Notes under the pieces: model-generated | Databases searched by the model: none | What the model saw: the letters and a program-made list of their open reading frames with translations, nothing else | What the model was told of the DNA's origin: nothing | Shown: positions 22,025 to 62,581 of the stretch, in pieces | Position numbering within the stretch: position 1 is the first letter of the stretch | Layout of the letters: the number at the start of each line of letters is the position of its first letter | Origin: Hyaloraphidium curvatum SAG 235-1 | Taxonomy: Eukaryota; Fungi; Monoblepharomycota | NCBI GenBank assembly: GCA_025558095.1 | Contig: JAIVFI010000027.1 | Coordinates: 248,001 to 312,000 of the forward strand | Direction of reading: 5' to 3' | Length of the DNA: 64,000 nt | Position numbers and translations under genes: made by a program

Positions 22025-22761
22025 GGAGTGAATGGCACGGAGGGACACATTCCGGATTGCGCAGGGGGGCTCGCGGCCGCCAGCAGATTCCCGATCGCGG
22101 CTTGGCGGAGAGAAGGGCAGCGGTGACGGCGAAGTCCCGGAGGCGCCGCTTAGAAGAGAGCGAGAGCAACTTGACACCGTGCCCTCAGAACTCAGAAGTG
22201 TAGATGAGAGTCCGGGAATCGACGACTGCCGGGCACAGTGACGCCGATCGATCATCCCCCGCGGCTGCAACGGATGGAACAGCGCGTTGAGCGGGGTGCC
22301 TGCCAGGCGGTCGGACCGTACCGAGGAGCGGAAGGGCACGGCAGAAGAGCACCGAGCCGGAATGCGACCCAGTGACGGAGGTCGCAGAAGCTGCCCTAGT
22401 GCGGTCCCGGGGACGGGAAGGGCGGCGGTGCGCGCAGGCCGGGCGAGGCGTCCGGACGGGGAGGGCGAGGGCCACAAAGCGCCCGATCTCGGCGATCTGG
22501 ATGAGCTTATCTGGGCGTCGATGGTTAAGGGGCATAATAACGCCGACCAATCGCCCGCCGTGGTGGACCAGGTGCGATTTCGGGACGGGAAGGGCAGCGC
22601 TGCCGGCAAGCCGGGCGAGGCGTCCGGACGGGGAGGGCGAGGGCCACAAGGCGCCCGATCTCGGCGATCTGGATGAGCTTACTTCGCGTCGATGGTTAAG
22701 GGGCATAATTAACGCCTCCCAAATCGCTCCCGAAATGGCGATCGCGTTAGTCCCGGGTTCG
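22025..22761 (+). repeat. Inverted repeat IR1, left arm (pairs with 31086-31809)
   Basis: ggagtgaatggcacggagggacac...gttagtcccgggttcg matches the reverse complement of 31086-31809 with a few substitutions and one ~12-bp indel. Confidence 0.95.
22410..22720 (+). repeat. ~172-bp tandem duplication of tRNA-Gly 5' flank plus tRNA 5' half
   Basis: gggacgggaagggc...gatgagctta...gcgtcgatggttaaggggcataat starts at 22410 and again at 22582; a more decayed copy starts ~22111. Confidence 0.9.
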
Positions 22762-22777
22762 AGTCCCGGTCGACGCA
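22686..22777 (+). tRNA. tRNA-Gly(CCC) with 21-nt intron
   Basis: Acceptor GCGTCGA/TCGACGC+A, D-stem GTTA/TAAT, anticodon stem AACGC/GCGTT with loop CT-CCC-A[intron]C, T-arm CCGGG-TTCGAGT-CCCGG, TTTT downstream; 71 nt mature. Confidence 0.9.
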
Positions 22778-24314
22778 GCGATATTTTGCTCGATCGAACC
22801 CCCCAGTGTTTCCCTTTTGCTGCTCTGGTGTCGTGGGCGCGGTTTGGGGGCAGTTTCGGAGGTGTAGCGGCTCCAGGCCGCCTGGAGCCGCTCTGGGGCC
22901 CGTGGAGCGTAGATCAGCCGGAACATATCCCAAAACGACCGCGGCACACTTGCTTACGACAGTTTACGGTGAAATTTTTGTCCGATCTGTCGCTTTTAGC
23001 GATGTGCAAGAGGTGGGGCGGCCGACAGTCGGCAAAGCCGCCGGCGTCGCTTGCCGCGTTCGCCGGCGGCTGGAGACAACCGCAAAACCTCTCGGGCCTG
23101 CTCTTCCGCCAGCGCCTCGCTTCCTGTCTCCCTCATTTCGGGCCTGATGCTGATTTGCTGGCTGCCCGGGACCGAGCTGTGCCCGCAGCTGCTCACCTGG
23201 ACGCGGAGGGTGGACTCGAAACGCGTCCGCGGACAATGTCTCCCCCGGGGCCCGGGCTGATGAAACCGGCTAGGCGCACCTGCGGGGTATCCGTACTGTC
23301 CTATTTCGCCTGCCCCTTCGCGGTACCGTTTCACTGCTGGCGCCGGAGGAGCTCCTCCGGCCAGCACACCTCTGAAGCTCACCGGCGTCGGGAGGCTTTG
23401 GGATTCCTCCTTCGCCGGCCTTAAAGCTGCCGATTGGCATTGTGGTTGCCTCGAACGATGCGCTCGCCGTGACCTGTCGAAGCGTCGAGGTTTGGGCACG
23501 AGTTCAGGAGCTTGACGTTTCGTCGGTACCGGAAAGAAGGAGATCGACTGAACGCCAGTGCTGTCCGGGGATCAAAGTTCGGATACTAGGAGGACTTAGG
23601 ATGTTTCGATGTGTTCCGCTCCACCAGCATTGGAATGTTCTGGGCGGACCCGAGAGACCCGGAGAGACCCGGAGCGGGGACTCGGCGGCGGAGCCCTCGT
23701 TCGGACCTTTGCCCTATTCTGCCTGCCGTATGTTTTGAGCGAAAGTTGCCAATTCTACCTGTTGAACGTTTCTTGGAGGGTCTGGGAGCCACGAGTCGGT
23801 GCTGGACAGGGTCTCGGGGTATGAACAGTCCCTGTCGCCGATGCCGCGTGGTCAGTGTGCCGAAGCTCTGGACGATGTTCCTTCTATCATGCCGCGAGCT
23901 ATGTGATCAACATTCGCTGATTTGAGTGAAGATTGGCGGCTCCGCCAACCTTTTGGCATCCGATCAGTCTCCGGGCCTTTTCCGACACGTCGACGCCGAC
24001 GGGACATGCCTTCCCCTCAGCTTCTCCTATCCTCGTCGTCATTTCTGCTCGATTCTTTGCTCCTCTCTTTGATTATGGCGGCCTTTTCGCCGACGAACGG
24101 CCGATCGCTGGTGCTTGGTCGTGCAGCTGAGCTAGCCCATCGGAGCTCGAGTAGACCAACGACCACCTCGTGCAATAGAAGCCAAAGCCTTCCATCCAAT
24201 AGATTACCATTCTTGCGGTCCATTGTGTTGTCGATCACACCAGCGCGCGATGGAGGGCATGGGACCGCCGCCCCCATTTTCTTTCCCAGAATTCTAAAGC
24301 CAATCGCGGGCACG

Positions 24315-27182
24315 ATGGCGTCCAATCCGTTTGACGACCCTCGTCTGCGGCCTCGAATTCTGCAGTATGAGAGAGAGAGAGGTTTCCGGACGGGCATCTT
24401 TCAGGAGGCGTTCGAAATCGCGTTTTCGCATTGCGGTCTCCGCGTGAACTTCGGCTCCACGCCTCCGGAAATCGTCATCGAGGGAGTTTTTGAGCCGGGA
24501 AAAGGCGATGATTGTCTGGACTACACGCGCGTGTTCAAGGGGAGCCTCTACGACTGGCATCCGGAAACGAGGACCCTGCGCCTCCGGGGCGGCTGCTACT
24601 TCGGCGACACCAGTCAGGACATGGAGGGCCGTGACAGGACGAAACAGGACTATCTGGAAGAGGCGATCCAGAAAGGTATGCTCGCTGTGACGGTTTTGAT
24701 CGCGCGTCTGACTTTTCCCCGCCCGTAGCCGGCGACGAGTACAAAGCGTTCGCCGTCCAAGTCCCCGACCGCCGCAAGCGGTCCATGATCGAGATCGCAA
24801 AAATGGCGCTGGGCAAGATCCTGTACTCGGACGGACCGAACCCGATCCTCAACCGGTCCTGCTTCGGTGTGCTGAGGCACGAGCAGCTGCGCGAGTGGGA
24901 GCACGAGGGTGTAGAGCTCGACCTCGTCCTCGAAATCGCAGGCGCGGCTCCTGGGCGCGTGCAGCAAGCCAAAAGGCTGCACATCGTCGACCTGCAGCGG
25001 GAATCGGCGCTCTCTGCGTCCGCTGCGTTCCATTTCGCCCGGGAGAACACTGACCTGGCGAACTTGTTCTGGGACTTCGAGTCGGCTGACTTGAAGAAGC
25101 AGCTAGCGCAACTGACTCGCGCCGAGCTCTTGGCTCACGAAGATCAGATCAAAGCTTTCGCCATCGAAAAGAGGAAGCGGATCCTGGTCTTCGCCGGTGA
25201 ATTCGGTCCCCTGTCAATCATTACCAAGCCGGCGGGACCCTTCCTCGACACGCTCGCAATGTCCTGGGTCATCCGGCTCTCCGACGACGTGTTTGCGATC
25301 GGCACCACCCGTTGCGATTTCGGTGTCTTCCGTTTCCACAACGACGAGGTGACCAGGGCGCTGAACGACCTCCACGATTTCAAGAAGACGCTGCTGGTCC
25401 GGGCGCACAGGTTCCTCGAGGCCCTTCCGCCGGACGAACTCGATCTCGAGGCGACCTACGTCCGCATTAAGGAGGAGATCCTGGATGCGGAGTCCGAGAA
25501 GCTCCGGGGCCTGATCGCCGTCGTCAAAAACGCTTTGGACAAGGAGAGAAAGCGATCCGCCGCAACGAACCCAGCCAAGAGCAAAGGCAAAGGTGCGTCG
25601 AAAGATGATCCAGCACGCAGCCGTTTCTGCAGCACCTGACGCCGAGGTCCGTGCAGGAGCCGAGAAGCAGCCGCCCGAATGGCGATCCAGCGTACCCGAC
25701 GCAGCCCTCAACGATCCGCAGGTCAATGCCAAGGTGCGGCAGCTCGATCGCGGCGGAGTGCTCGGGATCGCGAAGGTTGAAGCCGCCGGAGCCATCGATT
25801 CGGAGCATCCGAGCGGGGCCGCAGCCGAAGAGCCGAGCGATCCCGAGGAGCCGAACGATCTCGCGGACACACTAGAGGTTCCTGGGCCAACCGACGACGA
25901 CGGCTTTGCGGAAGAAGACGGGGTTTTCGACGCCGCCATCTCGGAGCAGGAGCTGGAGGAGAAGGCCATCAAGGACAAGGCTTTCGCGACCTGGCTCAGT
26001 CGAAAGCTGGCGGCGTCCAATCCGCGGTTCGACGCGATGACGGAGCGTCAGAAAGAGATGGAGCGCACAAAGCTCGCAAAGGAAGCGATCCGTCGTCTCG
26101 ATCTCTTGAAGGTCCTCAAGCACTACTTCCGCGGCAAGATCACGGAGAAGCAGCTCTTGACCCTCAGCGAGGAAGAGCTCATCGCCCTTGGCCGCCGGTG
26201 GTCCTACATCCTGATCAGCCAGACACCGGCCAGCGCGAAGGCCGAGGAGATCAGGCCTGTCTGCTGCGAGAACCTGATGCCGAAAGCCCAGGGCCTCGAC
26301 GAGACAAAGTTCCTGACCTGTCTCCACTGCAAGCACCAGTTTCACACGGAGCACAAGTGCGCCAAGATGTTCCGAGTCGTCGAGCGCCAGCAGGCCGCCC
26401 GGAAGGCCGCCGAGACCGAGGGACCGAGCGGGCCGAGGACCAGGAGCGGTTCGAGTGCTACTCCTTCGTCCTCTTCGGCGCTGGCGGACCCTCCCACGGA
26501 CTACTTCGCAGTCCTGATGGGCCGTGGTCGGCCGGCGTCGGGAAAGAGGAAGCGCCCCGCCGACGACGACGAGTTCGAGCCGGAGCCCAACGCCGACGAT
26601 GAACCCGACGAGAACGACGCCGTCGAGAAGTTCGCTGCGCCGGAGAAGAGCTGGAAGATGCAGTACCCGTGCGACTACGTCATCGTTCCCGGCATGACGC
26701 AGGAGCAGCACCGTTTGCTCGTGAAGAACCACGTCTTTCGCCGCGTCGTTCGCCGCTTCATCGAGAACGAAAGCCTGCCCCTCGTGATCAACAAAATCCA
26801 GATCGACGCAATGGTGGCGAAGGAGGTGCTCGACACGCCCGACGACGTGCATTCGGCGACCTTTATCCAGTTCTACGGCATCGACTTCCTGACCAAGAAG
26901 CTCAACTGCGAGAAGGCCGGAAAGGGCGACCGCCGCGTCGCCGCCCTTGCGAACTCGTACGGCCAGACCGTTGAGAACCGCGTCCTCGAGTACGCCATGG
27001 TTCACGGATTCACGATCACCCAGTCGGAAAGGCCGCGGGTGAAGAACGAGAGGGACAGGAGCGGCATTAACACGCCGATCCCGCTCTACTGCTTCTCCAA
27101 TGCGGAGCACCCGGCGCCGAAGAAGTTCGCGCAGCTGGAGCGGAAGGAGCTGCTCCGTTACAAGCACCTCATGGGCATCTGA
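24315..27182 (+). CDS. Orphan ~916-aa protein with putative GIY-YIG-like motifs and a Cys/His cluster
   Basis: Exons 24315-24675, 24729-25592 and 25657-27182 join in frame via canonical introns. GSLY..CYFGDTSQDMEGR..SMIE..NPILNR; CLHCKHQFHTEHKC; KRKR NLS-like. Gene model well supported, domain call weak. Confidence 0.75.
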
Positions 27183-27943
27183 TAGAGGCTGTAGACATTT
27201 CAAAGCATTGGCTTCTGCACCCTTGAGGCTCCTATTTCCTTCGCTTTGTCCTCGGTCGACGCGTTCCGAGTTTCCGACCGTCCCAGACTGTTGCCCCGGT
27301 CCAATCGCCGCAAGGATCCTCTCCTCAAGCTTCCATTGACATTTGAAGCCCGTTGATAGTTTGATCCGTGTTCATCGGCGGCGGAAGGTGACGCAAGAGA
27401 GAACGAACGTGCGCCCAAGTCGCGGCGGGTCGCGGATGGTGGTGCGTGTCACCCATTCAAGCGCGTACTTCGCCTTGAGGGAAGCCGTCTCCACGGTGTC
27501 CTTTCTGCCACAAAGCAGCGAGTTCCGGTTCAACCAATGATAGGTTCAAAGGTTCTTTTGCTCCGGGGACGGTCTGGGGAGGTGGAGGAGTGGAGGCGCG
27601 CGGCGGGCCTGCGGCCCGCCCGCCGCTTTCGCCCGATCCTCCCGGAAAACCTAATCCAAGCGGGCGGATACGTATCGCTTGCCGGATTTAGAACCTTCTG
27701 GTCTGATCATCCATCTTGATCTGCGTCCTTGATGCTGGTTGGGCGGTGCGGAGCCGAGCTACGTAGGTGAAACTCCGCCCGACGTCGCCCAATCCCAATC
27801 GCTTCCGCACGGAAATGGCCCGAGCGGCAACCGAATCTCGTCCTCCGCATTGACTTTATGCAATCTTTGGAGTTTGACTGGCTTTGACTAGGATCCTTGC
27901 CGCGAATCGGACCGGACCTCGCACCTGCCTCCGCACCGGACCG

Positions 27944-28477
27944 ATGCCGACCCCCCTGACGCGCTCCGCCTCCTCCCGCCCCTCTGCCCCCGGCATCCCC
28001 ACCCGCCCGCCACCGGACGCCAACCGCGCTCGCGCCCTGCGTCTCGTGAGCATGTACCGCTCGCTCATCGCCGACGAGGTGCCCCGGCGCTTCGGCGTCG
28101 TCTTTGCCCTCACGGACCGCGTTAACGGCCCCATGCTCCGCGAATGCGGGCTGCTCACACTGCGTACGGGCGGCAGGGAGCCGGGGAAGTTCAGGGCCAC
28201 GTACGGGGACTTGTTTGGGCTGGCGCCGGGGACCAAGGACTGGAAGCTGGACGGGGAGGCGATCGAGCGGACGCTGAGGGCCGCGCAGAGGCTGCAGGAG
28301 CTGGCGATGGGATTTGATGCAAAGTGGGGCGCCAGGGCGTCGCTACTCCTGCTGGACGCGGTACCCGTGGCGTTTGCCGTCGAGGCCGACGACGAGGCCT
28401 GGGCAAAGGCCGTCGAGTTTGCCAGGAAGAAGGGGCACGACATCATCAGGGGCGACAGGGTCGTCTTCGAGCCTTGA
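27944..28477 (+). CDS. Hypothetical protein (~177 aa)
   Basis: Intronless ORF with host-like GC3 bias and globular composition; no domain recognised. Confidence 0.55.
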   Translation: MPTPLTRSASSRPSAPGIPTRPPPDANRARALRLVSMYRSLIADEVPRRFGVVFALTDRVNGPMLRECGLLTLRTGGREPGKFRATYGDLFGLAPGTKDWKLDGEAIERTLRAAQRLQELAMGFDAKWGARASLLLLDAVPVAFAVEADDEAWAKAVEFARKKGHDIIRGDRVVFEP

Positions 28478-28675
28478 TGTTGCTCTGGTCTGGAGACTTG
28501 ATGGTGCGAAGGCGCCGACCAGACGTCCAAAGGAGAGATATCGTCCGAGGTCGGAGTTCCGTGGCCGTCCATCCTCCATCTCCGTCCACAAGCAAACACA
28601 TCCCACATCCCGTGGACAGCGGAAGGCCGAGGTCGGCAATGTACACCGGTGGCATTCACCGTCAGAGTGGTACAT

Positions 28676-29579
28676 CTACTCGTGGTGGCCGCCGCGGCGC
28701 TGCTCGGCGATGATGCCGGAGAGCTCGTCGATCTTGGTCTTTGCCCGCCGCATCGTGCCAAGCTGCAGAGGGAATGGGGGTTAAATGGTGTCCACAAATC
28801 GGTGCCGACCATATGCCCAGGTCCAAGGAACGGGGCCGCCGTCGCCTGCCCGGCAGACCACCGACGGCATCACGTCCGGCCGCTCCCCGCTGCCGCCCCC
28901 ATCTCCACCAGTGCAAGTCTCCAGCAAAGAGGTGCAAGACGCTGCGTCCGAACGGGCCGCACAGCCCGCATCCGTCCGCCGTCCCGCTTTCCTCGTTGCC
29001 ATGCGAGCCCGAGAAGGAACCTCACCTTCCGCTTCGCCAGCTTCTTCGCCCTCTTGTCCTTCGAGTTCCTCAGCAATTCCATGACCCTCCGCTCGTACGG
29101 CGCGAAGCCGGCGACCTCCCGGATGAGCTCGCGAACGTGCTTGACACGCTTGGAAACGTGCTGCGGGAGGCGGGCGTGAGCTTCCGGTTTGGGGAGAGAA
29201 CGACCGAGGGAGCGCCAAGGAGATGGGAACCCGATGGTGCGGCACAGCAGAGGGTCGGCCAGGCGGGGCGAGGGAGTCCGGCGAGGAGCGGACGACTGGC
29301 AATCCAGGCGAGCGCCCTCTGCCCCTCGAGCTCCACCCATCGCCCGCCCCACCCGGCCACCACGAGCAGGTCCAGCAGTCCAACTGCACTCCTCTGCCCT
29401 GCCGCCGCAGCACAGCGTCCCCATCTCCAGCGCCCGCCGCCGCGTCCGGCCGAAACACTGACCCCTTTCCGCGACACCGGCTTGGGCTTCAGCACCCGCG
29501 GGGTCACGACGTGACCGGCGTTAACGCCGGCAGCGATGCCGGTCTTCTGCACCGGCGTCCGCTCGATCGATTTCGTCAT
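28676..29579 (-). CDS. RPL36: 60S ribosomal protein eL36
   Basis: Exons 29463-29579, 29026-29160, 28676-28762: [45 protein letters not shown]|[14 protein letters not shown]. Confidence 0.97.
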
Positions 29580-29824
29580 CTCGGCGGAGGAGGAGAGAGG
29601 ACAGGAGGAGGTGTGGTGGCCGGGGTCTGGATGCGAAATTGTTGGGTTAGCGTGACCCAGCTGGACCGAAATTCCAACCGCAACTCTCCGCTCGAATTAG
29701 GCCCCGCCCGAGCCCCAAGGCGGGAACGAGGGCCGGAGCGAGGGTCGGCTGCCCGCACTACAGCGGGCGAGACCACCGGACAGCCCGCGTCTGCCCGGCA
29801 CCCCACGAGGGCGGCCCGAGCACC

Positions 29825-30894
29825 ATGCTCGCGGCGGGCGCGGCTCGGCCGCTGGCGGCCACCAAGGCCGAGCCGTACTACATCGGCATGTCGCTCGGCA
29901 CGTTTCTCTCGCAGGAGCTGCCGCCGCTCGCCCCAGAAAGCGGGGGAGGCCCCCGCCACGTCGTGTCGCGCGGCTCATCGGGCGAGGTCTCCGTGTCGGA
30001 AGGCGGCCGCGCCAACCGAGCCTCTGTCTACGCGATCCCGCCGCTGGTCATGGAGCGCGTCGACTCGTACGCGAGCCCGGCCCCGGCTGGCGCCTCGGCC
30101 AGCGACAAGACGCGCTACAGGCAGTCGATCGTCGAGCTGTCGGGCGCATGGGGCACATCCTTTTCCTCGGCGTCGGCGTCGGTCTTTTCCACGAGCTCCA
30201 ATGTGGGTCTTCATCCGGGGCCGCCGACGGTGCACGACTCATCTCCGGCCCTCCGCTGCCTGATGTTCAGACACCTCGCCCCGCTTCGCCGTCCGGCGAG
30301 CCAGCCATCGGCGGCCTCGCTTCGTCCCGCACCCGCGACCAGGACCTCCCCGAGCCCGAGGACCTCCTCATGATGCTAGCACACCGCCTGGCCCGCATGC
30401 ACGGGGTGTGGCGCATCCACGCGCCCGAGGAGCACCACGCCTACCCTCCCGAGGAGCTCGACATGCCCCTCCCCGTGGGCCCGCTCATCACCGCCGTGCA
30501 CGAGGTGCTCGCCGTCATGCGTGCGCTGTCCCTGCAGGGCATGCCCGGCGACGACGGCGGCGCGCTGTCCCGCGTGGTGCGGGACCACGCCGTAAGGGTC
30601 ATCGCCGTGGTGCGGTCGCTCGACTCGGAAAACAGGGTTGAGTGGTACCACCGCGCCCTCAAGGAGGGCACGGCAACGCACAGGCCCGTGTGCTTGGGGG
30701 ACCTGGTGAGCGGAGGGAAGCAGGGCATCGTGTGCGAGTTTGGGAGCGCCGTGGCGGACCTGTTCCTTCGGGAGGACGACGAGGACTACGACGGCGAGGA
30801 GTACGACGGCGAGGAGTACGACGGCGAAAACTACGAGGACGGGGAATACGAAGACCGGGACGACGGCGATGTTGCGTCGGATGGCGAGCAGTAG
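29825..30894 (+). CDS. Hypothetical protein with acidic YDGEE-repeat tail
   Basis: Two exons joined by an intron at ~30203-30270; 15-bp tandem repeat (tacgacggcgaggag) at ~30787-30835. Confidence 0.6.
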
Positions 30895-31085: not shown

Positions 31086-31161
31086 CGAACCCGGGACTAA
31101 CGCGATCGCCATTTCGGGAGCGATTTGGGAGGCGTTAATTATGCCCCTTAACCATCGACGC
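31086..31161 (-). pseudogene. 3'-truncated tRNA-Gly(CCC)
   Basis: Matches 22686-22761 but breaks in the T-loop (GGTTCG|tggggg) and lacks AGTCCCGGTCGACGCA. Confidence 0.88.
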
Positions 31162-31809
31162 GAAGATAAGCTCATCCAGATCGCCGAGATCGGGCGCTTT
31201 GTGGCCCTCGCCCTCCCCGTCCGGACGCCTCGCCCGGCTTGCCCGCAGCGCTGCCCTTCCCGTCCCGAAATCGCACCTGGTCCACCACGGCGGGCGATTG
31301 GTCGGCGTTATTATGCCCCTTAACCATCGACGCCCAGATAAGCTCATCCAGATCGCCGAGATCGGGCGCTTTGTGGCCCTCGCCCTCCCCGTCCGGACGC
31401 CTCGCCCGGCCTGCGCGCACCGCCGCCCTTCCCGTCCCCGGGACCGCACTAGGGCAGCTTCTGCGACCTCCGTCACTGGGTCGCATTCCGGCTCGGTGCT
31501 CTTCTGCCGTGCCCTTCCGCTCCTCGGTACGGTCCGACCGCCTGGCAGGCACCCCGCTCAACGCGCTGTTCCATCCGTTACAGCCGCGGGAGATGATCGG
31601 TCGGCGTCACTGCCCGGCAGCCGTCGATTCCTGGACTCTCATCTACACTTCTGAGTTCTGAGGGCACGGTGTCAAGTTGCTCTCGCTCTCTTCTAAGCGG
31701 CGCCTCCGGGACTTCGCCGTCACCGCCGCCAAGCCGCGATCGGGAATCTGCTGGCGGCCGCGAGCCCCCCTGCGCAATCCGGAATGTGTCCCTCCGTGCC
31801 ATTCACTCC
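31086..31809 (-). repeat. Inverted repeat IR1, right arm
   Basis: Reverse complement of 22025-22761, including both tandem units. Confidence 0.95.
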
Positions 31810-31885
31810 GCTGGTGGGATATGTTGTGGTAGAGCCCGGACAGAAGGGTTGTGCAGGAAGCGGCGCACCAGCATCCCAACCCTGA

Positions 31886-43961: not shown

Positions 43962-44655
43962 GGGGTCTGTAGCTGCTTACTGCCCCGTCCTGGCTGCCCT
44001 CTCGGATGCTGGCGGGCACCGGAACCATATCAACCATACCAGACATGCTCGGTGTTGCTCCGACGTTTGATCGGTGTAATCGGTGGGCGAGATCAGGCGT
44101 CTCGAGGCGCCCACGGCAGCGCTTCGTTCACCAGCAGCAACCTACAGTCCAAAGGCCGCTCGATGGACCCAATCAGCAAACGATCCGCGGATGGCGGTCG
44201 CTGGCATCGCGTGCCCGCCCGGCGTTTCGTCCGTGGGGCGCAGAGCAAGGGACAAGGAGGCGCCGGCCTACCCCGAGCCTCCGACCCCTCCAGGTCCCCA
44301 GAATCAGCTAGAGCTCCGATCCGCCGGGCATGAAGCCTGGTGGCAAGCATACGTCCGGCATTGCGTGCCGGGCTCGAAGGGAGAGGCAACGGCCGGGTTG
44401 GGAGGCGCCAGCCTGGCCAACAGCAACCAAGCCGTCAAGAGCCCCAACTCCAGCTAGAACTTTGATTGGGAAGGGCATGTGGTGTAGTGGCAGCGTATCT
44501 CCGCTTTGCTTGCCGTGTTCGAAGGGGAGAGGGAGCAGATGGTGGAGGCGGCCGCCTGGTTCCCAGCACCCTACCCTTCCAGGTTCCCAGAATCAGCTAG
44601 AACTTCGATCAAAGTTGGGCATGTGGTGTAGTGGCATCATACTCACGTTCGGGTT
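43962..44655 (+). repeat. Inverted repeat IR2, left arm (pairs with 52954-53519)
   Basis: ggggtctgtagctgc...catcatactcacgttcgggtt matches the reverse complement of 52954-53519; more diverged than IR1 and has one extra tandem unit. Confidence 0.92.
44617..44655 (+). pseudogene. tRNA-Pro 5' half truncated just after the anticodon (further decayed copies at 44473 and 44326)
   Basis: GGGCATGTGGTGTAGTGGCATCATACTCACGTTCGGGTT followed by unrelated sequence; no T-arm. Confidence 0.85.
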
Positions 44656-44920
44656 ACGCTAGCGTCTGGGACCTGGAGAGTGGCGTGAATAAGATGCGTC
44701 CGGTCCTGATGCTGGGGTTGTCCCAGGTATCGAAGGATCCATCACTGTTATGAAAGAGGGCATGCATAGCAAGCAACAAAGAGAAAGCTTCGCCGAAGCA
44801 TCTATACCATCAATCTCCGAGCGTTGACGACGATGCGCGGCGATTCCATCGATCGTCCGATCGCGCACCCACCTTTATCGGCGTGCTCGGCTTGACGCGT
44901 TCCCCCTCACCGAGGCCAAT

Positions 44921-46444
44921 ATGGGCTCCCTGGAAATTGATCCAACTTTGCTGGACATTGAGACGATCCGCGCCGGGCTGGCCTCGGGCGCCATGACCGC
45001 CGAGGCCCTCGCGGCGGCCCACATCGCCCGCGCGGACCTGCTGGAGCCTCGGCTTCGCGCGCTGACGTTCCGGAACCACGCCGCCTTGGATGACGCCAAG
45101 GCAATTGATGCCAAACTGGCCCGCGGGGAGGATTTGGGGCCGCTGGCCGGCGTGCCGGTCATCGTGAAGGAGGCCATCGACATGGCTGGGTTCGCATCCA
45201 CCGCTGGATGGGCGCCGTACGCCGAATCGCGGGCGATGGTGCCCTCCCGCGACGCCCCCGTCGTGCAGAGGCTCCGAAAAGCGGGAGCCGTTATCATCGG
45301 CAAGTCCAACATACCTCCCTTCTCCTACGACGATTGCCGGACGGCTGGATCGTGGCGAGGCCTTACCGTCAACGCGGCGCACCCGGCTTCTGCCCCCGGT
45401 GCTTCTTCGAGCGGCACCGCCGCGGCTATTGTGGCTGGATACGGGGTCGTCGGGCTCGCCGAAGAGACCGGAGGGAGCATCCAGAACCCGGCTTCGGCCA
45501 TGTCGCTCTACAGCGTGAAGCCGACCTTTGGCCTCGTGCCGAACGCAGGCGTGGTGCCGATTGCGGGGTCCACTCGCGACGTTGTAGGACCGCATGCGCG
45601 GAGCGTCAGGGACGCCGCCATCCTGCTCGACGTTTTGGCGGGCTACCATCCCGAGGACCCAAAGACGGTGGCCTCGATCGGCAACGTCCCCGAGGGCGGC
45701 TACACCTCGCTGCTTTCGGATTCGGCGCTTGCAAGTGCGCGCCTGGGCACGTATGGACCTGGTTGGCGGACCCAGTCTCTGGACGAAGAGACAGCGGCAC
45801 TGTACGGCGCTGCGCTGGACCGGATCGCCTCGCGGGGAGCAACCATCGTCGCCGACCCCTTTGCTGGCACCGGCTTTGCCTCTTTCCGCCGTGTGGACAA
45901 GAACGGATTCGACGAGCGTGGCTGCGAGTCGATCGTCTACGACTTTGCGGCATACCTTCGTCGGCTCGGCCCCGGCAACCCAAAGACCCTTGCCGAACTG
46001 GATGCCAAGGCCAGAAAACCAGCATTTGCCCCCGATACCGTGCTGTCGCATTGGCTCGAGCATCCGGTGTCGAAAGCCAGCCTCGCGGATCCAGATGCCG
46101 TGCCTGACCTCTCGGAGTTTCTCTCCGTGCGCATCCAGCACCTGGCGCTCTTCAACAAGACCATGGACGCGCACGGACTGGACGCCCTCGTGTTTCCGCA
46201 GACGTTTAGGAAGCTCCCGGCGGCGGACGGCACCGATGCCTGGCCTGCAACCACGGTCGACGAGATCAACATCGCCGGGGTCCCCTTGGTAACGGTGCCG
46301 GCGGGTGCTTACGCTGACGGAGCGCCGTTTGGCCTGGTGGTTGTCGGGCGGATGTGGTCGGAGGCCAAGCTGCTGGCCTTGGCGAACGATTACGAGCAGG
46401 CTTTCGGCGGTAGAGTGGGGCTTGCCAAGGAGTTGATGAGCTAG
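44921..46444 (+). CDS. Amidase-signature family enzyme, intronless
   Basis: GPLAGVPVIVKEAID (catalytic Lys), PGASSSGTAAA, ETGGSIQNPA (Ser nucleophile), KPTFGLVP, TRDVVGPHARSVRDAA. Confidence 0.93.
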   Translation: MGSLEIDPTLLDIETIRAGLASGAMTAEALAAAHIARADLLEPRLRALTFRNHAALDDAKAIDAKLARGEDLGPLAGVPVIVKEAIDMAGFASTAGWAPYAESRAMVPSRDAPVVQRLRKAGAVIIGKSNIPPFSYDDCRTAGSWRGLTVNAAHPASAPGASSSGTAAAIVAGYGVVGLAEETGGSIQNPASAMSLYSVKPTFGLVPNAGVVPIAGSTRDVVGPHARSVRDAAILLDVLAGYHPEDPKTVASIGNVPEGGYTSLLSDSALASARLGTYGPGWRTQSLDEETAALYGAALDRIASRGATIVADPFAGTGFASFRRVDKNGFDERGCESIVYDFAAYLRRLGPGNPKTLAELDAKARKPAFAPDTVLSHWLEHPVSKASLADPDAVPDLSEFLSVRIQHLALFNKTMDAHGLDALVFPQTFRKLPAADGTDAWPATTVDEINIAGVPLVTVPAGAYADGAPFGLVVVGRMWSEAKLLALANDYEQAFGGRVGLAKELMS

Positions 46445-47064
46445 CATTTAGAGTTAGAACAGCGTATGTTGTTCGCGAAGGCAGAGTACTCTTTTAGTGG
46501 CGGCTGCATAGAAGTAGTCGACAATTGAAGCGGTGCCTGGCCCGTGCTCTTTATTGGGCGGAGTTTGGCGACAATCACGGAATCCAGAAAAGATGGCCAC
46601 AAAGCCGAACCATGCAGGTTCCAATGCATATTATGAGCCTCTGAGGGACGATAATGCTGCCTTGTGGCCATTTGGCCGTTATGGGTGGGCCTCGTGTACT
46701 TGCACAATCTACTGATCCCAGCCGGAATTGACTTCACCTCCCAAACGACCTATTTCGATCCAAGGGCCACAAACTTGCAGCTCTTTGATGCTTCCTTTGT
46801 GCGGCGCTTTGCGCCGCGGCCCAAAAGGGCGGCGGCCGCAGGCCGCCTCCACCCCGCTCCTCCACATCTCCCACCGACAAAAACGATCTCGGCTTTGAAG
46901 CGACGCTGCTATAGTAATAATCCCGTCAATTGACTGATTTTGACAAAGCATCTACACCTGACCAACATGGATAGAACCAACCCAACGACATCGCGCTCCA
47001 CATCCACGATCACTCGGCCGGCGCCCTGCTGCGCGCCGCCTCACGCCCCGCCTCCCGCGCGAGG
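46374..47064 (+). repeat. Direct repeat A (copy at 52047-52562); near-identical 284-bp core 46781-47064
   Basis: Core differs from 52279-52562 at ~3 positions; the outer part (amidase 3' end and flank) is visibly more diverged. Confidence 0.93.
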
Positions 47065-50000
47065 TCGATCAGCCAGACCGGCTGCGTTCCAGGCGGCCTT
47101 TGCTCGCAGTCCTTGGGGGAACCGGTACGGCACATCCGGCAAGGGCCAGGCATGCCAGGAGGAGGAACGAACATCTTGTGGAAGCCACGGCAGCAGCAGC
47201 AGCCGCACTGGACGAGCCAGTCGGCGCGTTCCGTACGCACGGTCTTGGTCGGGTGCTTCGGGTCCTGCACGTGCCACATCCGAACGAGCTTGCCCTCCAG
47301 ATCCCGGAGAAGGCCGTCGGCGGGCATCGCCTTGTCCTTGCCCTTGAGCTAGCGGTTGAGCTTGAACTCGCGGTAGCCCTGGGCCAGGCGGAGGTTGTAG
47401 CCCGAGGCGTCGAAATCCGGGGTGTGTGCTTCGACGGGCACCGGCCACATCGCGCACTGATTCATTGCCCGCTTGCCCGCGTGGTTCTCGCACATCGTGC
47501 AAAGGAGCGGCGGGGCGAGACTGGCCAAAGCAATAGAAGGTCAGCACACCCAATCCCCGCACCATGCAGGCCGAAACCCACTCTCGGCAAGGGCAGCAGC
47601 GCCCGTTGCACTTGTCGTCCGCCGTTTCATCCCTGTGCGTGCTCCCATCCTTGCCTCCGCTCCGCAGCCGCTCCCGTGCCGCCTCCTCGCCCTTCCTCTG
47701 TGCGATCCAGGCCACGGCACAGAGGTACGGTCGGCGGTCGGGGTTCTCGGGGTCGCACTTGCCGCACCACAATCCCTCAGCCTGCCGGGACCGAAGGAGA
47801 TGAGCAAAGGCAGCACAGAGAGCAACGATCGGGCCCTCACTCCGCGACCGGAGTCGATGCAACAGTAGATGCAGTCGGAGTGGCCTTGACGACGGAACTT
47901 GCCGTCCTGGGTCAGGCCGACGCCGCGCTCGAAGAGGGCGATCGCGTCGACGGCGGCGGTCGCCTTGGGAAACTCGTTCTTGAATATGCTGCTTTTGCGA
48001 TAGCTGAAGTAGGCGGCAAAGAAGAGGGTGGTGAGTAGTGCGGCCTAGACAGGTACTGTGAATAATGGTCCCACGTTGCGGCATCATAGGCATGGTGACA
48101 GCCTTCGTGCATCACGGTCCTTGTGTCTTGCATTTTGCGGAGCTCGTCCAACAGGAAGCGGGCATCTCCCGGAGACGGAGGGTTTCGACCGTAAAGAACT
48201 TGCCGAACTGCCTCCCGGAAGACGCTCTCATGCATGGCGTAACCCGGGCGAAGACTCCTGTCCAGGTAGAATGCCCATCGCGGGATTTCGGGAAACTTGA
48301 TGACGAGGTCGTCGTAGTGCGGACGATAGGAGCCCTGCTCATGACGGCGTAATGAGCAACAGCATCACAGACGGCAGAACCAACGACCCACATCACCTGC
48401 CCTTGTGGCGGCGGCAGGGGATGTTTCAAAAGGATCCTGATGAGGCAAGGGCTATCAATCGCGGCCGTCGGCGGAAAGGTCAGCAATCCTACCTCGCCCT
48501 CGATCAGACCGGAAGCAGAAGCCAACAGCTGGTCAAAGTTCACTCCGGCAAAGAAGGCCCCGGCGCCGAACTCCTCGGGCGGCTGCCAGCCCCGGTAAGC
48601 TCGGCCATACTTGCCCGGGTTGTCCTCGCCGTCCTCGGGATCCGAAGCATAGGCGTACGCGGCCGGTCCGTCTTCTTGCCATGGGTCATCGCGGCCCTTC
48701 CACGGGCAGTTGACCGACTCGCAACCGCGGCGAAGCTTCTTCTGCGCCGACTCGAGGTTGACGGAATCAAGCTCGTCCAGAGTGCCTTCCTCGAGCCGCT
48801 CGCCGTACATAGCGTTGTGCTTGCCACGGTTCGTGTCCAAAGCGGTCGCATTGTGGGTCACGCAGACGGGGCCCACGGGCAGCTGCATTTCCTGTACCAT
48901 GGCCACGCGGTCGGCGACAGTGCCATTCGGCAGCGTCTGCGACAAGTTGACGCCCTTGATTCCCGTCTCGTTGCCTTCATGCGGGCTCGTGCCGTGGCCC
49001 ACGTGGAGGTGAGCGCCGAAGCCGTCTGCCCACGTGACGGGGCAGCCGGGGGCGGAGCAAGCCAAGCCCTCCGGAGGCACAACGTTCAGCTTCTGCAAAT
49101 GGACCACAAATCAGCGTGGCACACAACGTTGATCGCGAGAAGCACCTGGCCCATCTTCTGGGTGATATAGGACTTCTGGAAGTCCTTGATGATCATGGCA
49201 CGCAGCAGCTTGAGGCGCGCGTCGTACCCGTCCTTGCCCCCGGCTGGCTGCTCGAGCCAGGCCTTGGTCTCCGGATACCGGTTGAGGACGACGATCAGAG
49301 CTTCCGACAGGATGGTGTCCGTCGGCTGAAGCCGCGAGTCCATGTAGCCTTGGAACGTCGAGAAGGGTCCGGCCGGGACGCTGTCGAATTTCTCGAGTGC
49401 CCTTCGGATCTGGTTGTCCTCCGTCGCCTCTGCAAATGCGAGACGAAATCAGGCTTGCCATGGCGCTAAGCTCGAGACGACAGACGTACCACGCCTCGCG
49501 CGTTCCCGGCGTGCCTTGGCGTTGATGAGTTGACCTTCCTTGAGCTGCTTCTTGAGCTTCTCCGCACAGCCGACGGTGCACGTCCACATCCTGTTGCCGC
49601 TTGGTAGCTGAACCCCTTTGTCGGCTCCGAAGCCCGGGCAGCCCGGAAGCGCACACTGGAAGAACGGAAAGGCAGCCTAACGTGAGGAATGGCTGCATCT
49701 AAAGCGGCATGAACACGTACGGGCTTCCTTGTGGACAAAACAAGGGCCGAGTCGGTAGACGCCTCGTCGTCGGGCTCGACAACCTCGATCATGCCGTCCT
49801 GCGGACGGCTTTGAGCCAGGTATGGGCAAAGGAAGCGCTGGAGGCACGCACCACTTGAGCTTCCGCGCCGGCAAAGAGCACCCTGGGGACGCTTGCGGCG
49901 CGCTTCTTCTTGACCTTGCCCGCCTTGGTCTCCGGTTTGCTGGATGTTTCCTGAACGGGGAATCAGTGCCGTGAACGGCGACGTCAGGCGATCGCGCGTT

Positions 50001-50529
50001 TGCCGACCTCCGTCTTGGCTTCTGGCGACGCAGCTCCGATCTTGACGTCGAGTTTGCTGGATGCCTTGCCCTTCTTCTTCCTCACGTTCGGCGAGAGTGG
50101 TCCTGAAGAACAACAAGAACAACGGGAAGCATTAGGTCAGAAACACGGACCACGAGCAATCCACGTGCCTTTGATCAAGTTCTCCTCCCGCTCGGAATCC
50201 TCCGACGACGACGTTTCGACGGCACGCCGGTTCTTCCTCTTCTTGCTCTGGAAGCTGTGCTCGAACGGGTCGTAGTCGTCATCTACACGCGGGCCGCGGT
50301 CAGCTTCCGGGCAGATACGGCGAACGTGGCTTGAGTACGCACCCGACGAGTCCCGTTTGGCGGCTCGAACACGTTTGCTCTGTTTCGACTGGCCGTGGAC
50401 GGTCTTGCCCTTGCGCGGCAGGTCGTCGTCCGAATCCTGCGGCGGCCCACCGCCGGGCAGGCGGAGGATCTTTGATTCGCGCACCTCGGCCCTCGTGGGC
50501 CGCGGCGCGGCAGCGTCCGAGTCTCCCAT
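47010..50529 (-). CDS. Large orphan multi-exon Cys/His-rich protein with HNH-like motif(s); in-frame TAG at 47349-47351 (possible pseudogene)
   Basis: Coherent exons separated by GT-AG introns; basic N-terminus; CALPGC..CTVGC, CSAPGC..AHLHVGH..PVCVTHN, CESVNC..VMHEGCHH, CIYCC, CGKC, CTMC, CGCCCC..CRMC. FKLNR*LKGKDK is in frame with ORF 47010-47327. Confidence 0.65.
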
Positions 50530-52046
50530 GGCTGCGTGGTGTCCCGAGCCCAGCAGCGGCGCAGGAAGGTGCCCGCCGGTGCCGCGGTCCGGCGCTGCCC
50601 CGCCCGGCTTGGGGCGCTCGGGGGCGGTCGCAGGCGTGCGCCGAGGCCGGGAAAAGGGCGAAGTTTCGGGAAACGCGTCCGCGCGACGTTCTGCGCCGCG
50701 AAAGTGCGGGGCAGAAGGGGTGTCCGTCCGCGGGGCGAGTTGCGATTCGAAAGGAGTTCGCAGGGGCGCCGCCGGTCCCTCAAAACCCAACCAATCGCGG
50801 CGCGACCAACTCGCCGCCAAACCGGGCGGAGCACTCCAAATCCGTCGCAAAACAGCCAATGACGACGCCTGCCGCAGACGGGCGGGGGGATTCCCCCTCC
50901 CAGGCGCGTCGCGGCCAGCCGTGATCACGTTGGTGCGACGGCCAACGAGTCCCGCCCGACTGCCCTCGAGTGGCGTTGCCGCACGCGTCTAGGCCTCCAA
51001 TCGGGCGTCATGATCGACTGTCCTTCCGCTGGCGGCGTGTTGGCCGTTCAGATGGCCTCCTCGGCGAGCGGAGGGGGCGACGGGCTGCGCACAGTCAGCG
51101 TCTCTTTGCCCCGCGTCGCCCGCCTCGGTCGGCCTCTGGAGGCCCCTTCTGCGGGTTCATCTTGCTCCAGGAGGGTGGGAAACTTTTCCGGCATCGAGCC
51201 TTGGAGCCTCGGTCATCGCCGGGCGTCGGATTCCGAACGGTCGCTCGGGGCAACTCCGGTTCGCGTGCCCGCCGAGGATTCCGCCGGCGACAACCAGTGG
51301 GCCCCAATCTCGACCGCCTATCCATGGGAACACACGGTCACCGAGATGGAGACTTGGAGGCGTGGTGGAGAGCGGCAGTCGGTCCCCCGTGAAGTGGGCG
51401 TCGGGTCGGCGGGTCTCCCAGCTCGAACCGGCCAGCTTCTCCATGCTCGGCATGTTCATCGGTGTTTTGAGGTGCCCACCATCGTCCCGGCCGTCTCGAA
51501 GGACGACGGCATCTTCCCGACAAGCGTGGATCACGTGGGACGGCGGTCAGGGGGACGGCGCGCCCTCGGCTGCCTCGGGCGACGGCGCCGGCGGGAATGC
51601 CCCGGATCCGACCTCCCTTTCGAACTCAGAGGAGGATCTCGGAGGTTGGCGGCACTCTGCAGGCAGAGCGGGGGGAATGCGATGCGGGTGGCGGGAGCGC
51701 GCCTTCCGCTCGAGGGATATCGTGCCTGCCCCCTGAACAGCGGCGACCTTCAAGCAACCCGAGGGCCCGTGCGGGAGACTGAATCCGAAAGAAGGCAATC
51801 AACGGAATCGTACCTGATCGTTCTTTTGCAGGATCGCGCCAAGCCGTCGGATCAGATACCGTCCGTGAACGCCTATAGCCACCAAATTCTCCGACCGCTT
51901 GCCAGGTTCATTAGCCGGCCAAATATGATACAACAAAAATTAGATTCGATTAGCTGGGGAGCAAGCGACGGCATGCGGGTGTCGCAGAAGGCCTTTCCCC
52001 GCACCTCCGACACCTCCAAAACGCCCCACCAACAGCAAAAGGCGGA

Positions 52047-52562
52047 TGGCCTTGGCGTATGATTACGAGCAGGCTTTCGGCGGGAGAGTGGGGCTTGCCA
52101 AGGAGTTGATGAGCTAGCATTCAAACTTAGAAGAGCAATTTTTGTTCGCGAAGACAGAGTAGTTTGAAATGGCGGCTAAATGAAGTAGTCGACGGGCTGG
52201 CCCAAATCTGCCGATCCGACCCGGTATCTACTCCACTTCCCAAAAGACCGACTTCTATCCGAGCGCGACGGAAATTTCCTCTTTGATGCTTCCTTTGTGC
52301 GGCGCTTTGCGCCGCGGCCCAGAAGGGCGGCGGCCGCAGGCCGCCTCCACCCCGCTCCTCCACATCCCCCACCGACAAAAACGATCTCGGCTTTGAAGCG
52401 ACGCTGCTATCGTAATAATCCCGTCAATTGACTGATTTTGACAAAGCATCTACACCTGACCAACATGGATAGAACCAACCCAACGACATCGCGCTCCACA
52501 TCCACGATCACTCGGCCGGCGCCCTGCTGCGCGCCGCCTCACGCCCCGCCTCCCGCGCGAGG
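52047..52562 (+). repeat. Direct repeat B (duplicated 3' ends of the amidase and the orphan gene)
   Basis: Contains gattacgagcaggctttcggcgg..gagctag (amidase end) and, on the minus strand, LAREAGREAARSRAPAE* (orphan gene end). Confidence 0.93.
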
Positions 52563-52585
52563 CCGCTGCCAAAGGATCCAACCGA

Positions 52586-52648
52586 GGGGCAACGGAACGG
52601 TCCACGGGGCAACGGAATGGTCCACGAGGCACCGGATGGGTCCACGGG
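52586..52648 (+). repeat. 20-bp tandem repeat x3
   Basis: ggggcaacggaacggtccac / ggggcaacggaatggtccac / gaggcaccggatgggtccac. Confidence 0.85.
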
Positions 52649-52904
52649 TGCGGATCTGATCACCCACCACGGCCCCAGCCGGACACCAGCCCCAACCGCG
52701 CCGGCGTTCAGGGAACGAAAACGCGGACGTGCCAGCACGAGCGAGGAGTGGAAAACGAGCGATGGAGTGAAGAACCGGCGAGGAGTGCGCTTGTTGGGTC
52801 TTGGTGGCGCCTCCCTCCCTCCGTGCGCTCCCTGCCCCCCCCCCCTACTCAAAATCCTAAACTCACTTCACCAAAAACTCACTTCACCAAAAACTCGACG
52901 TAAG

Positions 52905-52991
52905 GGGGCAAGCTGGGATTTGAACCCAGGGCCACTCCGAACTCCGAGACGGAAACCCGAACGGAGTATGATGCCACTACACCACATGCCC
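52905..52991 (-). tRNA. tRNA-Pro(CGG) with 15-nt intron
   Basis: GGGCATG TG GTGTAGTGGCATCAT A CTCCG TT-CGG-G[TTTCCGTCTCGGAGT]T CGGAG TGGCC CTGGG TTCAAAT CCCAG CTTGCCC C; 72 nt mature; T5 terminator downstream. Confidence 0.92.
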
Positions 52992-53519
52992 AATTTTGAT
53001 CGAAGTTCTAGATGATTCTGGGGAGCTGGAAGGCTAGGGCACTGGGAACGAGGCGGGGGCCTCCACAACCCGCTCCCTCTCCTTTCAAGCGCCGCTGAAA
53101 AAAACAGAGATTCGATGCCACTGAACCACATGCCCCCACCAATCGAGGTTCTAGCCGGTTCTGGGGACCTGGAGGGGTCGGAGGCTCGGGGGTAGGCCGT
53201 GTACGGCCCGGCGCCGCCTGACTTGTCCCTTGCTCTGCGCCCCACAGACGAAACGCCGGGCGGGCACGCGATGCCAGCGACCGCCATCCGCGGATCGTTC
53301 GCCGATTGGGTCCATCGAGTGGCCTTTGGACTGTAGGTTGCTGCTGGTGACCGAAGCGCTGCCGTGGGCGCCTCGAGAAGCCTGATCTCGCCCGCCGATT
53401 ACACCGATCAAACGTCAGAACAGCACCGAACATGTCTGGTATGGTTGATTCACAGCTTCGGTGCCCGTCAGCATCCGAGAGGGCAGCCGGGACGGGGCAG
53501 TGAGGCAGCTACAGACCCC
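52954..53519 (-). repeat. Inverted repeat IR2, right arm
   Basis: Reverse complement of 43962-44655; includes a decayed tRNA-Pro 5' half at ~53105-53135. Confidence 0.92.
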
Positions 53520-62563: not shown

Positions 62564-62581
62564 TCGTCGCTGCTCGCGGGC

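Follow-up and report, generated by a model that had tools for sequence, protein, structure and literature searches.

Why should two unrelated tRNA genes in one fungal genome each be enclosed by inverted copies of themselves, and each be followed by a large orphan gene? The question is raised by a 64,000-nucleotide stretch of DNA (the window) from the pond fungus Hyaloraphidium curvatum, a chytrid, whose genome carries both islands, one at tRNA-Gly(CCC) (22025-31809) and one at tRNA-Pro(CGG) (43962-53519). On balance, we favor the reading that such loci are free-standing, isotype-specific genes for predicted endonucleases that cut tRNA genes in a SegB-like manner, the arms and stacked tRNA halves being scars of repair.

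Two inverted-repeat islands

The Gly-CCC island contains the following features.

22025..22761, + strand: left Gly arm, comprising upstream flank, one dead 5' half and tRNA-Gly as far as the T-loop
22410..22581, + strand: 172-nt tandem unit, a 100-nt flank plus a scarred tRNA-Gly 5' half (lacking 1 nt at position 24/25, its anticodon loop altered)
22686..22777, + strand: intact tRNA-Gly(CCC) with a 21-nt intron
22753..24314, + strand: leader that runs from the tRNA T-stem up to where gene 1 starts, marking the 5' edge of the shared unit (85-93% identity over aligned positions to the DNA behind tRNA-Gly(TCC), C27:357231)
24315..24675, + strand: gene 1 exon 1, with invariant Y70, Y95-x-G97 and R106 (dN/dS 0.16; NCBI model P0001 omits it, paralog model P0003 includes it)
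24729..25592, + strand: gene 1 exon 2, with E142 and N162, both invariant (numbered as in P0003), and a middle domain that is conserved (dN/dS 0.26-0.31)
25657..27182, + strand: gene 1 exon 3, with an acidic linker, helical domain, Cys/His cluster and conserved C-terminal domain (dN/dS 0.54-0.66)
27585..27635, + strand: GC-rich hairpin (z -3.3), resembling the hairpin behind gene 2 and not conserved in the gene-1 paralogs
28750..29579, - strand: host RPL36, trapped between the arms (lower end approximate)
29825..30894, + strand: unannotated gene between the Gly arms, without a Pfam match
31086..31809, - strand: right Gly arm, its tRNA truncated in the T-loop; both junctions occur in independent short-read contigs

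The two Gly arms align with 716 matches, 7 mismatches and 3 indels, and the right tRNA-Gly copy ends in the T-loop after 76 nt. A 2.2-kb contig of short-read run X1 joins right-arm variants to the right outer flank, and a contig of run X2 spans the T-loop junction of the same arm. With both right-arm junctions recovered in two studies, the Gly arms are most unlikely to be an assembly artefact. The two runs, either of which may be the source strain, were assembled independently and their reads compared with the Gly island only; the left Gly inner junction is not bridged among the short-read contigs listed. Contig depth was set aside as an expression signal because the deep contig continues into RPL36.

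The Pro-CGG island has a comparable layout.

43962..44655, + strand: left Pro arm, comprising flank, older 5' halves at 44327 and 44473, and a further copy at 44617 that has gained 1 nt after position 28 and breaks off where the intron begins
44921..46444, + strand: intronless amidase, a trapped host gene (PF01425, E 1e-65)
46369..47067, + strand: direct repeat copy A, the amidase tail plus a 287-nt block that overlaps gene 2 at its last codons and 3' region
47010..50529, - strand: gene 2, a multi-exon Cys/His-rich orphan with HNH-like CxxxxC..HxGH..VC motifs in the 48532-49107 exon
50482..51745, - strand: gene-2 leader (it shares 97% identity with a fragment at C27:352.5-353.7k and 78% with the Pro-AGG copy)
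52042..52565, + strand: direct repeat copy B, which duplicates part of the gene-2 end, lacks its 5' portion and lies between the full gene and the tRNA (against copy A, 99% over 287 nt and 88% over the amidase tail)
52905..52991, - strand: intact tRNA-Pro(CGG) with an intron (Rfam 47 bits; mislabeled as Gly by ARAGORN)
52992..53519, - strand: right Pro arm, made up of upstream flank and a single dead 5' half (53116-53135)

Here the arms (43962-44644 and ~52949-53519) are ~92% identical in their outer part and ~85% in the inner unit. Gene 2 carries an in-frame TAG at 47349-47351, where its paralog reads through.

Much of the architecture originally described was borne out. Both inverted-repeat structures, at Gly and at Pro, are real, and each arm pair holds one intact and one truncated tRNA. 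Stacked tRNA 5' halves are present as the 172-nt unit in each Gly arm and as ~145-nt units at Pro, two extra on the left and one extra on the right. A co-oriented orphan gene lies downstream of each intact tRNA, gene 1 at 1.54 kb and gene 2 at ~2.4 kb, and no transposase, integrase or reverse transcriptase (RT) is recognizable in either. The arms are also compatible with inversions, by staggered breaks or template switching, in which host genes became trapped.

The conserved unit and its linkage to tRNA genes

The conserved unit is the tRNA 3' end together with the downstream orphan gene, not the 9.7-kb island. When the Gly-CCC and Gly-TCC copies are compared, homology sets in at the tRNA T-stem and extends over the downstream gene only, and arm geometry varies; the idea of an element 9.6-9.8 kb long and bounded by inverted repeats therefore had to be given up. 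An inverted truncated tRNA copy occurs at four of the five Gly/Pro loci: the Gly-TCC arms point outward and lie ~17 kb apart, those of Pro-AGG come without flank, and Gly-GCC has the orphan gene without arms or scars. A TIR-bounded transposon with the island as its unit was rejected, the arms being locus-specific tRNA flanks that differ in geometry and content. The hairpins behind genes 1 and 2 do resemble each other (local score 43 versus a shuffle maximum of 33), as had been claimed, but the resemblance is unremarkable against real genomic background and no such hairpin follows either gene-1 paralog or either external homolog. As a shared terminus it was rejected, since it is not common to the gene-1 paralogs.

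Linkage of the orphan genes to tRNA genes holds genome-wide and is amino-acid specific (Gly, 3/3; Pro, 2/2). The gene-1 paralogs, at C27:359-361.6k and C11:297-300.8k, lie ~1.5 kb downstream of tRNA-Gly(TCC) and of tRNA-Gly(GCC), respectively, the sole gene-2 paralog in the genome lies behind tRNA-Pro(AGG), and no further genomic copies of either gene were found. A site picked at random has a ~0.5% chance of falling in the 3 kb that follow a tRNA. The two genes, first taken to mark a single family of loci, are two unrelated families. Neighborhood DNA was read at nine tRNA loci. A third tRNA-linked orphan family occurs at C21:454.6-457.3k, between tRNA-Leu 3'-end arrays; its matches lie 2.5, 5.3, 6.4 and 14 kb from tRNAs, and another lies 7 kb from an array. 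At tRNA-Leu(TAA), a 3'-end duplicate adjoins a single-copy orphan without a paralog. Families 1 and 3 are colinear at a score that is not significant (15 of 100 shuffles reach it), so we do not claim that they are related.

The 916-residue gene-1 protein is under purifying selection, with the lowest dN/dS in exon 1, and has two full-length distant external homologs (22-30% identical); their contigs, which cover 0.9-1.4 kb upstream, show no tRNA beside them. Between the Gly-CCC and Gly-TCC copies, leader and exon 1 are closer (dS 0.51) than exon 2 (dS 1.36), a mosaic such as would be expected of conversion tracts starting at the tRNA. GT-AG sites, conserved intron positions and NCBI models lead us to infer that the orphan genes are spliced, as previously supposed, but the two short-read runs examined contain no spliced junction of these genes. 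Spliced models were searched exon by exon or via proteins P0001-P0003, and gene 2 in exon pieces. A protein search with gene 2, within a limited length window, gave no match, nor did tblastn against phages or scans of metagenome and viral contigs. P0006 (6,679 aa, E 3e-9) was not placed and is probably a repeat-rich chance match.

Conserved residues suggestive of nucleases

The original prediction regarded the orphan proteins as nuclease-like, a view that profile and fold searches did not sustain: they gave no nuclease match, and the models are of low confidence. Both genes are without a match in Pfam, PHROGs, NCBIfam, PDB sequences and the ESM Atlas, a search of the organism's own genome with PF01541 did not recover them, and hhalign of gene 1 against seven T4 GIY-YIG domains gave no significant result, with 44 of 150 shuffles scoring at least as high. 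AlphaFold models from shallow alignments reach pLDDT 45 for gene 1 (weak) and 33 for gene 2 (unusable); the top fold matches were common helical bundles and were rejected. No RT match appeared in any exon piece or paralog scanned.

What points to nucleases is the pattern of conservation. Across the gene-1 family, the 22-30% identical homologs included, 49 of 395 columns are invariant. Among them Y70, Y95-x-G97, R106, E142 and N162 stand in GIY-YIG order (family definition, PMC1564403), with a column-shuffle p of ~5e-5 for a post hoc spacing that was fixed after the sequence was seen, and with exon-1 ends of the distant homologs that align differently in other alignments. The Y-to-YxG gap is 25 aa versus the usual 10-11, the predicted strand-strand-helix-strand-helix order fits GIY-YIG loosely, and residues 57-132 have pLDDT below 50 and no fold match. 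From these residues we infer that gene 1 may encode a divergent GIY-YIG endonuclease. The two copies of gene 2 share C, C, GH, H, GN, VC and N, an HNH-type set drawn from two sequences only with a model of pLDDT 33, which suggests a putative Zn-binding, HNH-like endonuclease.

Scars at tRNA genes and a proposed mechanism

In dead copies of four different tRNAs, the first indels fall at positions 24-30 (p ~0.01-0.02, post hoc), and one arm stops at the T-loop rather than at positions 24-30. The predicted endonucleases would have the tRNA gene itself as their target, from genes situated 1.5-2.4 kb downstream of intact tRNA genes and outside introns and inteins. We propose that each locus is a free-standing selfish gene parked directly downstream of a tRNA gene, and that C-terminal DNA-binding parts of each enzyme would read its own tRNA type. 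The enzyme would break tRNA-gene DNA near the D-stem/anticodon-stem junction (positions 24-30) and may have another hot spot at the T-loop. During crosses, the break would copy the gene into the empty allele (intronless homing), and the shared T-arm would permit a jump to a sister isoacceptor locus. The self-cut tRNA appears to be low-copy, such that only cells rebuilding an intact copy would survive. Repair might leave a scarred 5' half stacked ahead of the intact gene, or might produce an inversion with the flank duplicated in reverse, trapping neighbors such as RPL36 and the amidase. The arms would then be scars rather than element ends.

The closest parallel is SegB of phages T4 and T6, a free-standing GIY-YIG homing endonuclease of 221 aa that is encoded among tRNA genes and cuts tRNA-containing DNA (PMC2988022, PMC13096335); in T4 it drives tandem amplification of tRNA segments (PMC13096335). 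Both systems have a stand-alone gene beside tRNA genes and tandem tRNA-segment repeats, and here N-terminal catalytic residues and C-terminal DNA-binding parts are likewise predicted. The H. curvatum genes differ in being nuclear, apparently spliced and ~900-1100 aa long, without detectable sequence homology to SegB. Moreover, each family keeps to a single amino-acid isotype at loci that are dispersed and non-allelic, the same niche also holds an unrelated second family, rich in Cys/His, and the scars are inverted as well as tandem.

Alternative explanations

Among the alternatives, the one that survives best, though we judge it improbable, is that the loci are site-specific transposons or integrative elements of novel chemistry. 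These would insert at and rebuild the tRNA 3' end in an att-like manner through an unrecognized recombinase located in either the middle or the C-terminal conserved domain, and aberrant transposition would account for the rearrangements. The sharp homology edge at the T-stem between the CCC and TCC copies speaks for it, as do the identical Gly-TCC and Gly-GCC 3' ends (~24 nt), chimera-like in combination with a 1:72 mismatch in the TCC copy, the partial tandem copy of the gene-2 end, and weak fold matches to tyrosine-recombinase core-binding bundles (Z below 4.5). Those matches are nonetheless at noise level, and no displaced tRNA 3' end was found on the distal side within 30 kb. Target duplication is absent at Gly and amounts to a 3-nt match at Pro, no common terminus was found among the paralogs, the invariant gene-1 columns include no DDE or R-H-R-Y set, and only 2-3 copies exist.

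Known elements were compared with the same features. Dada DNA transposons are eukaryotic, spliced and zinc-finger-bearing, use one tRNA isotype per family with target sites near the A box/anticodon arm, and insert inside the tRNA with 6-7 bp duplications and a DDE transposase (PMC3706591, PMC8869645). Isotype specificity, apparently spliced eukaryotic genes, predicted zinc-binding parts and a proposed target near the anticodon arm are shared, but identity was rejected on the intact upstream tRNA and the lack of a 3' half at the far end, of a 6-7 bp duplication and of a DDE with a C/DxxH set. Starships are fungal, carry host-like cargo and in some cases target Pol III genes (5S rDNA) (PMC11162782). 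A Starship or other tRNA-integrating tyrosine-recombinase element was also rejected, there being no DUF3435 captain or Int (Pfam blank) and no attR-like 3' end; the cargo here is instead local host DNA trapped by inversion and different at every locus. Penelope-like elements combine a GIY-YIG endonuclease, introns and RT, with a partial tandem 3'-end copy before the full copy. Gene 2 has a similar partial copy preceding the full gene, but no copy contains an RT, the repeat flanks an HNH-like rather than a GIY-YIG-like gene, copies are few, and linkage is to tRNAs, so this identity too was rejected. The wtf drivers adjoin 5S rDNA in fission yeasts, and Ty3 and TRE elements adjoin tRNAs. These resemble our loci as selfish genes dispersed beside Pol III genes; the orphan genes differ in lacking membrane toxin features, RT and integrase, and in their isotype-specific linkage.

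Scarcely more or less credible, and similarly improbable in our estimate, is that tRNA genes in this genome are intrinsically fragile hubs of ectopic recombination, and that the orphan genes are passengers spread via tRNA homology rather than makers of breaks. Many loci do have repeats of tRNA halves, among them Leu-TAA and another Leu locus (C21:665-670k), isoacceptor similarity alone could yield isotype specificity, and the orphan proteins have no nuclease match. Yet the Tyr and Phe loci examined have ordinary neighbors and no tRNA halves nearby, and fragility leaves unexplained the indel cluster at 24-30, the catalytic-type conserved residues and the three unrelated orphan families in one niche.

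An RNA-level toxin-antidote system, in which transcripts of tRNA-Gly or tRNA-Pro are attacked by the orphan protein while the divergent tRNA linked to it serves as a resistant antidote, seems quite unlikely. The linked tRNAs are isotype-matched and deviate from the consensus through compensated changes (D-loops are altered, Gly-TCC has A15:U48, and stems are changed in Pro-CGG), but DNA scars go unexplained, the RNase motifs HEPN and PIN were not found in the orphan proteins, and three different Gly tRNAs would all have to escape a single toxin. That the arms are assembly artefacts is least credible of all and largely refuted for the Gly island, since the arms differ by substitutions and indels and the independently assembled X1 and X2 contigs contain the junctions of the right arm, even though long-read assemblies can contain palindromic chimeras and one inner junction is unbridged.

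Implications

Homing endonucleases of eukaryotic nuclei are known in rDNA group I introns and in inteins, and a limited literature search found no free-standing ones beside nuclear tRNA genes. Extending the endonuclease reading, we suggest tentatively, and with less conviction, that early-diverging fungi may harbor a class of nuclear, intron-containing, free-standing endonuclease genes of at least 2-3 unrelated families. Each would recognize one tRNA isotype at the DNA level and spread by homing and isoacceptor jumps, with the divergent linked tRNA protecting its carrier as a natural cut-and-rescue system, and the class would be one of the main causes of the genome's inversions and tRNA-half satellites.

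If true, this would extend intronless homing to eukaryotic chromosomes, provide new sequence-specific nucleases whose three Gly and two Pro variants form a natural series of specificities, and offer a concrete explanation of how tRNA-half satellites and tRNA-associated inversions arise. H. curvatum is in culture and the proposal is therefore testable. Should the proteins turn out not to be nucleases, the pairing of orphan families with tRNA genes by isotype would still be a solid, unexplained pattern.

The orphan genes follow tRNA genes across the genome

A genome-wide search of the eukaryotic 31.9-Mb assembly (55 contigs; the window is contig 27, 248001-312000) returned exactly two paralogs of gene 1, the orphan behind the window tRNA-Gly(CCC), and exactly one full paralog of gene 2, the orphan behind tRNA-Pro(CGG), with an additional 5' fragment of gene 2 at C27:352-354k (C denotes assembly contigs).

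C27:357154, tRNA-Gly(TCC): gene-1 paralog starting ~1.6 kb behind the tRNA, co-oriented
C11:302400, tRNA-Gly(GCC): gene-1 paralog starting ~1.5 kb behind the tRNA, co-oriented
C27:342617, tRNA-Pro(AGG): gene-2 paralog behind the tRNA

The amino acid of the adjoining tRNA matches at 3/3 new loci, and the chance that a random site lies no more than 3 kb downstream of a tRNA is ~0.5%. Homologs of the orphan genes are thus tRNA-linked elsewhere, as the original prediction anticipated, and this genome-wide linkage is the main new result. The tRNA gene number of H. curvatum seems low, with 31 Rfam matches among 63 scored candidates in the assembly plus a few extra found by pattern; nine tRNA loci were read in detail.

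The tRNA-Gly(TCC) at C27:357154 (stretch L018:5154-5256) carries a T1:C72 mismatch and an A15:U48 pair; if it is not a chimera whose 3' end is of GCC type, it is a candidate for 5' editing, a process known for the mitochondrial tRNAs of H. curvatum. Directly upstream of tRNA-Gly(GCC), a short minus-strand ORF (C11:302450-302800; L023:2450-2800) resembles by eye the end of an integrase-core domain. C11 also holds a 210-nt direct repeat at 313.4k and 317.2k (L024, C11:309.5-310k, upstream side). Right after the Pro-AGG gene-2 copy lies a Tc1/IS630-type transposase (DDE_3, E 4e-8; C27:349.3-350.4k; L017:7300-8400), probably an independent insertion.

Inverted arms and the extent of the shared unit

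Features of the window

22025-22761 and 31086-31809: Gly arms; 716 matching positions, 7 mismatches, 3 indels
43962-44644 and about 52949-53519: Pro arms; outer part ~92% identical, inner unit 85%
1098-3197: KDM5-type JmjC demethylase, ordinary host gene
54065-55168: SET-domain protein, ordinary host gene
57889-60144: S15 peptidase, ordinary host gene
31886-33655, minus: 589-aa orphan ORF without a Pfam match; its end is 77 nt from the right Gly arm
62040-62569: MITE-like 47-nt inverted repeat, arms 96% complementary, spacing 436 nt

Alignment confirms both tRNA-anchored inverted-repeat structures. In each arm pair one tRNA is intact and contains an intron, the other copy is truncated, and additional 5' halves are stacked upstream. 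The Pro arms are older than the Gly arms, and the islands enclose the host genes RPL36 and amidase. For the right Gly arm an assembly artefact can be dismissed, because in contigs from two public runs the arm shows its own variants and continues into its outer flank, and its inner T-loop junction is present as well.

The ~9.6-9.8 kb island bounded by these repeats had been proposed as the unit, a view that fails on comparison between loci. The Gly-CCC and Gly-TCC loci become homologous at the tRNA T-stem and remain so through the gene; upstream of the T-stem they share no DNA. The arms point inward at Gly-CCC and Pro-CGG and outward, ~17 kb apart, at Gly-TCC; Pro-AGG has a bare inverted half 13.8 kb distant, and Gly-GCC has no inverted arm. 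Since the arms are inconstant, and neither a target duplication nor a displaced tRNA 3' end was found at the loci checked, the island is better regarded as a by-product than as the element. All three flanked cases could be fitted by a single two-break inversion scheme, in which the tRNA and a point some kilobases away would both be broken, and repair would invert the interval and copy the tRNA flank, the truncated copy marking the tRNA's original site.

Between the CCC and TCC copies, dS is 0.51 for the leader and exon 1 and 1.36 for exon 2; in exon 2 the CCC copy is nearer to the GCC copy (dS 0.65). This pattern, with leader and exon 1 nearer TCC and exon 2 nearer GCC, suggests conversion tracts with the tRNA as their anchor.

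tRNA scars and tRNA-Leu arrays

Four different tRNAs have dead copies (truncated or indel-bearing duplicates) whose first indel lies in one seven-base stretch where the D-stem meets the anticodon stem (post hoc p about 0.01-0.02, uniform model).

First indel in dead tRNA copies

Gly-CCC: minus 1
Gly-TCC: plus 2
Pro-CGG: plus 1
Pro-AGG: minus 3

Homology of the older Pro halves fades there too; the exception, one Gly arm, terminates in the T-loop. At two Leu loci, the tRNA 3' copies have each lost the two T-loop T residues.

C21:452645-461911, minus (L025-L026): tRNA-Leu, then two 3'-end plus terminator arrays (22 extra copies)

These arrays bracket 6.7 kb containing a third orphan, which carries a YxGQ..KR..H motif, along with fragments judged by eye to be ABC-transporter-like and UTP20-like. 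Five further matches to this orphan lie on C9, C14 and C21, four at 2.5-14 kb from a scored tRNA and one at 7 kb from an array. By coordinates only, the first 34 nt of a second tRNA-Leu (C21:665245-670431) recur exactly 5,080 bp upstream of it. A co-oriented single-copy orphan ORF of 370 aa (C27:229-230k, minus; L012:980-2089), possibly a fourth family, lies 2 kb behind tRNA-Leu(TAA); 130 nt downstream of this tRNA is a mutated duplicate of its 3' end.

The encoded proteins

Gene 1 encodes 916 aa in three exons, the first absent from the NCBI model; its product is on file for the monoblepharid chytrid Hyaloraphidium curvatum as a hypothetical protein. Purifying selection acts on the gene, most strongly on exon 1. 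An exhaustive search recovered two distant full-length homologs (22-30% identical) in Logan contigs from other samples, with the first two introns at matching places and every domain kept. Their contigs start 0.9-1.4 kb before the start codon and contain no tRNA there; as the spacing here is 1.5 kb, this says nothing for or against linkage.

Among the N-terminal columns of the family, 49/395 are invariant, including Y70, Y95-x-G97, R106, E142 and N162. The order Y, YxG, R, E, N is that defining GIY-YIG domains (PMC1564403); column shuffling gives p about 5e-5 for this order, with the spacing picked after inspection. The residue order therefore favors the nuclease-like character originally proposed, but other comparisons do not: spliced models queried per exon or as retrieved proteins matched no family library, profile alignment to seven T4 GIY-YIG domains was not significant, and the predicted model, unreliable across the GIY-YIG-like stretch, matched no fold. 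We lean towards gene 1 encoding a GIY-YIG domain protein. Its Gly-GCC copy (protein model P0002; L023, C11:300.6k) bears a frameshifting exon-1 deletion just before the YxG motif; Gly-GCC is also the sole gene-1/gene-2 locus without tRNA scars.

Gene 2 and its paralog share Cys/His motifs of HNH type (dN/dS 0.46), the one line of support for a nuclease-like product, and its assignment as an HNH-type protein is tentative. In the window copy, an in-frame stop lies 112 codons short of the end. A second copy of a 287-nt repeat that begins within the last codons of gene 2 sits between tRNA and gene, together with a copy of the amidase tail. The hairpins noted behind the two genes do resemble each other, yet the other gene-1 copies lack such a hairpin.

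A putative homing mechanism

The pattern is real and unusual, solid for linkage and scars and putative in its enzymology. Most economically, each orphan would be a free-standing gene for an endonuclease whose target is the cognate tRNA gene. Such a gene would spread by being copied into cut empty alleles and would occasionally move to a sister isoacceptor via the shared T-arm. The enzyme would sometimes cut its own locus, and because tRNA genes seem to be few, survivors would have to rebuild an intact copy, leaving exactly one intact gene and scarred halves.

Membership among Dada, Starship, Penelope-like or TIR elements was considered by the criteria of each, and the loci fit none. A working precedent is phage SegB, whose gene is situated among tRNA genes, homes without an intron (PMC2988022) and drives tandem amplification of tRNA segments (PMC13096335). 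On this reading, the gene-1 and gene-2 loci of H. curvatum would work like SegB, yet belong to no family tested.
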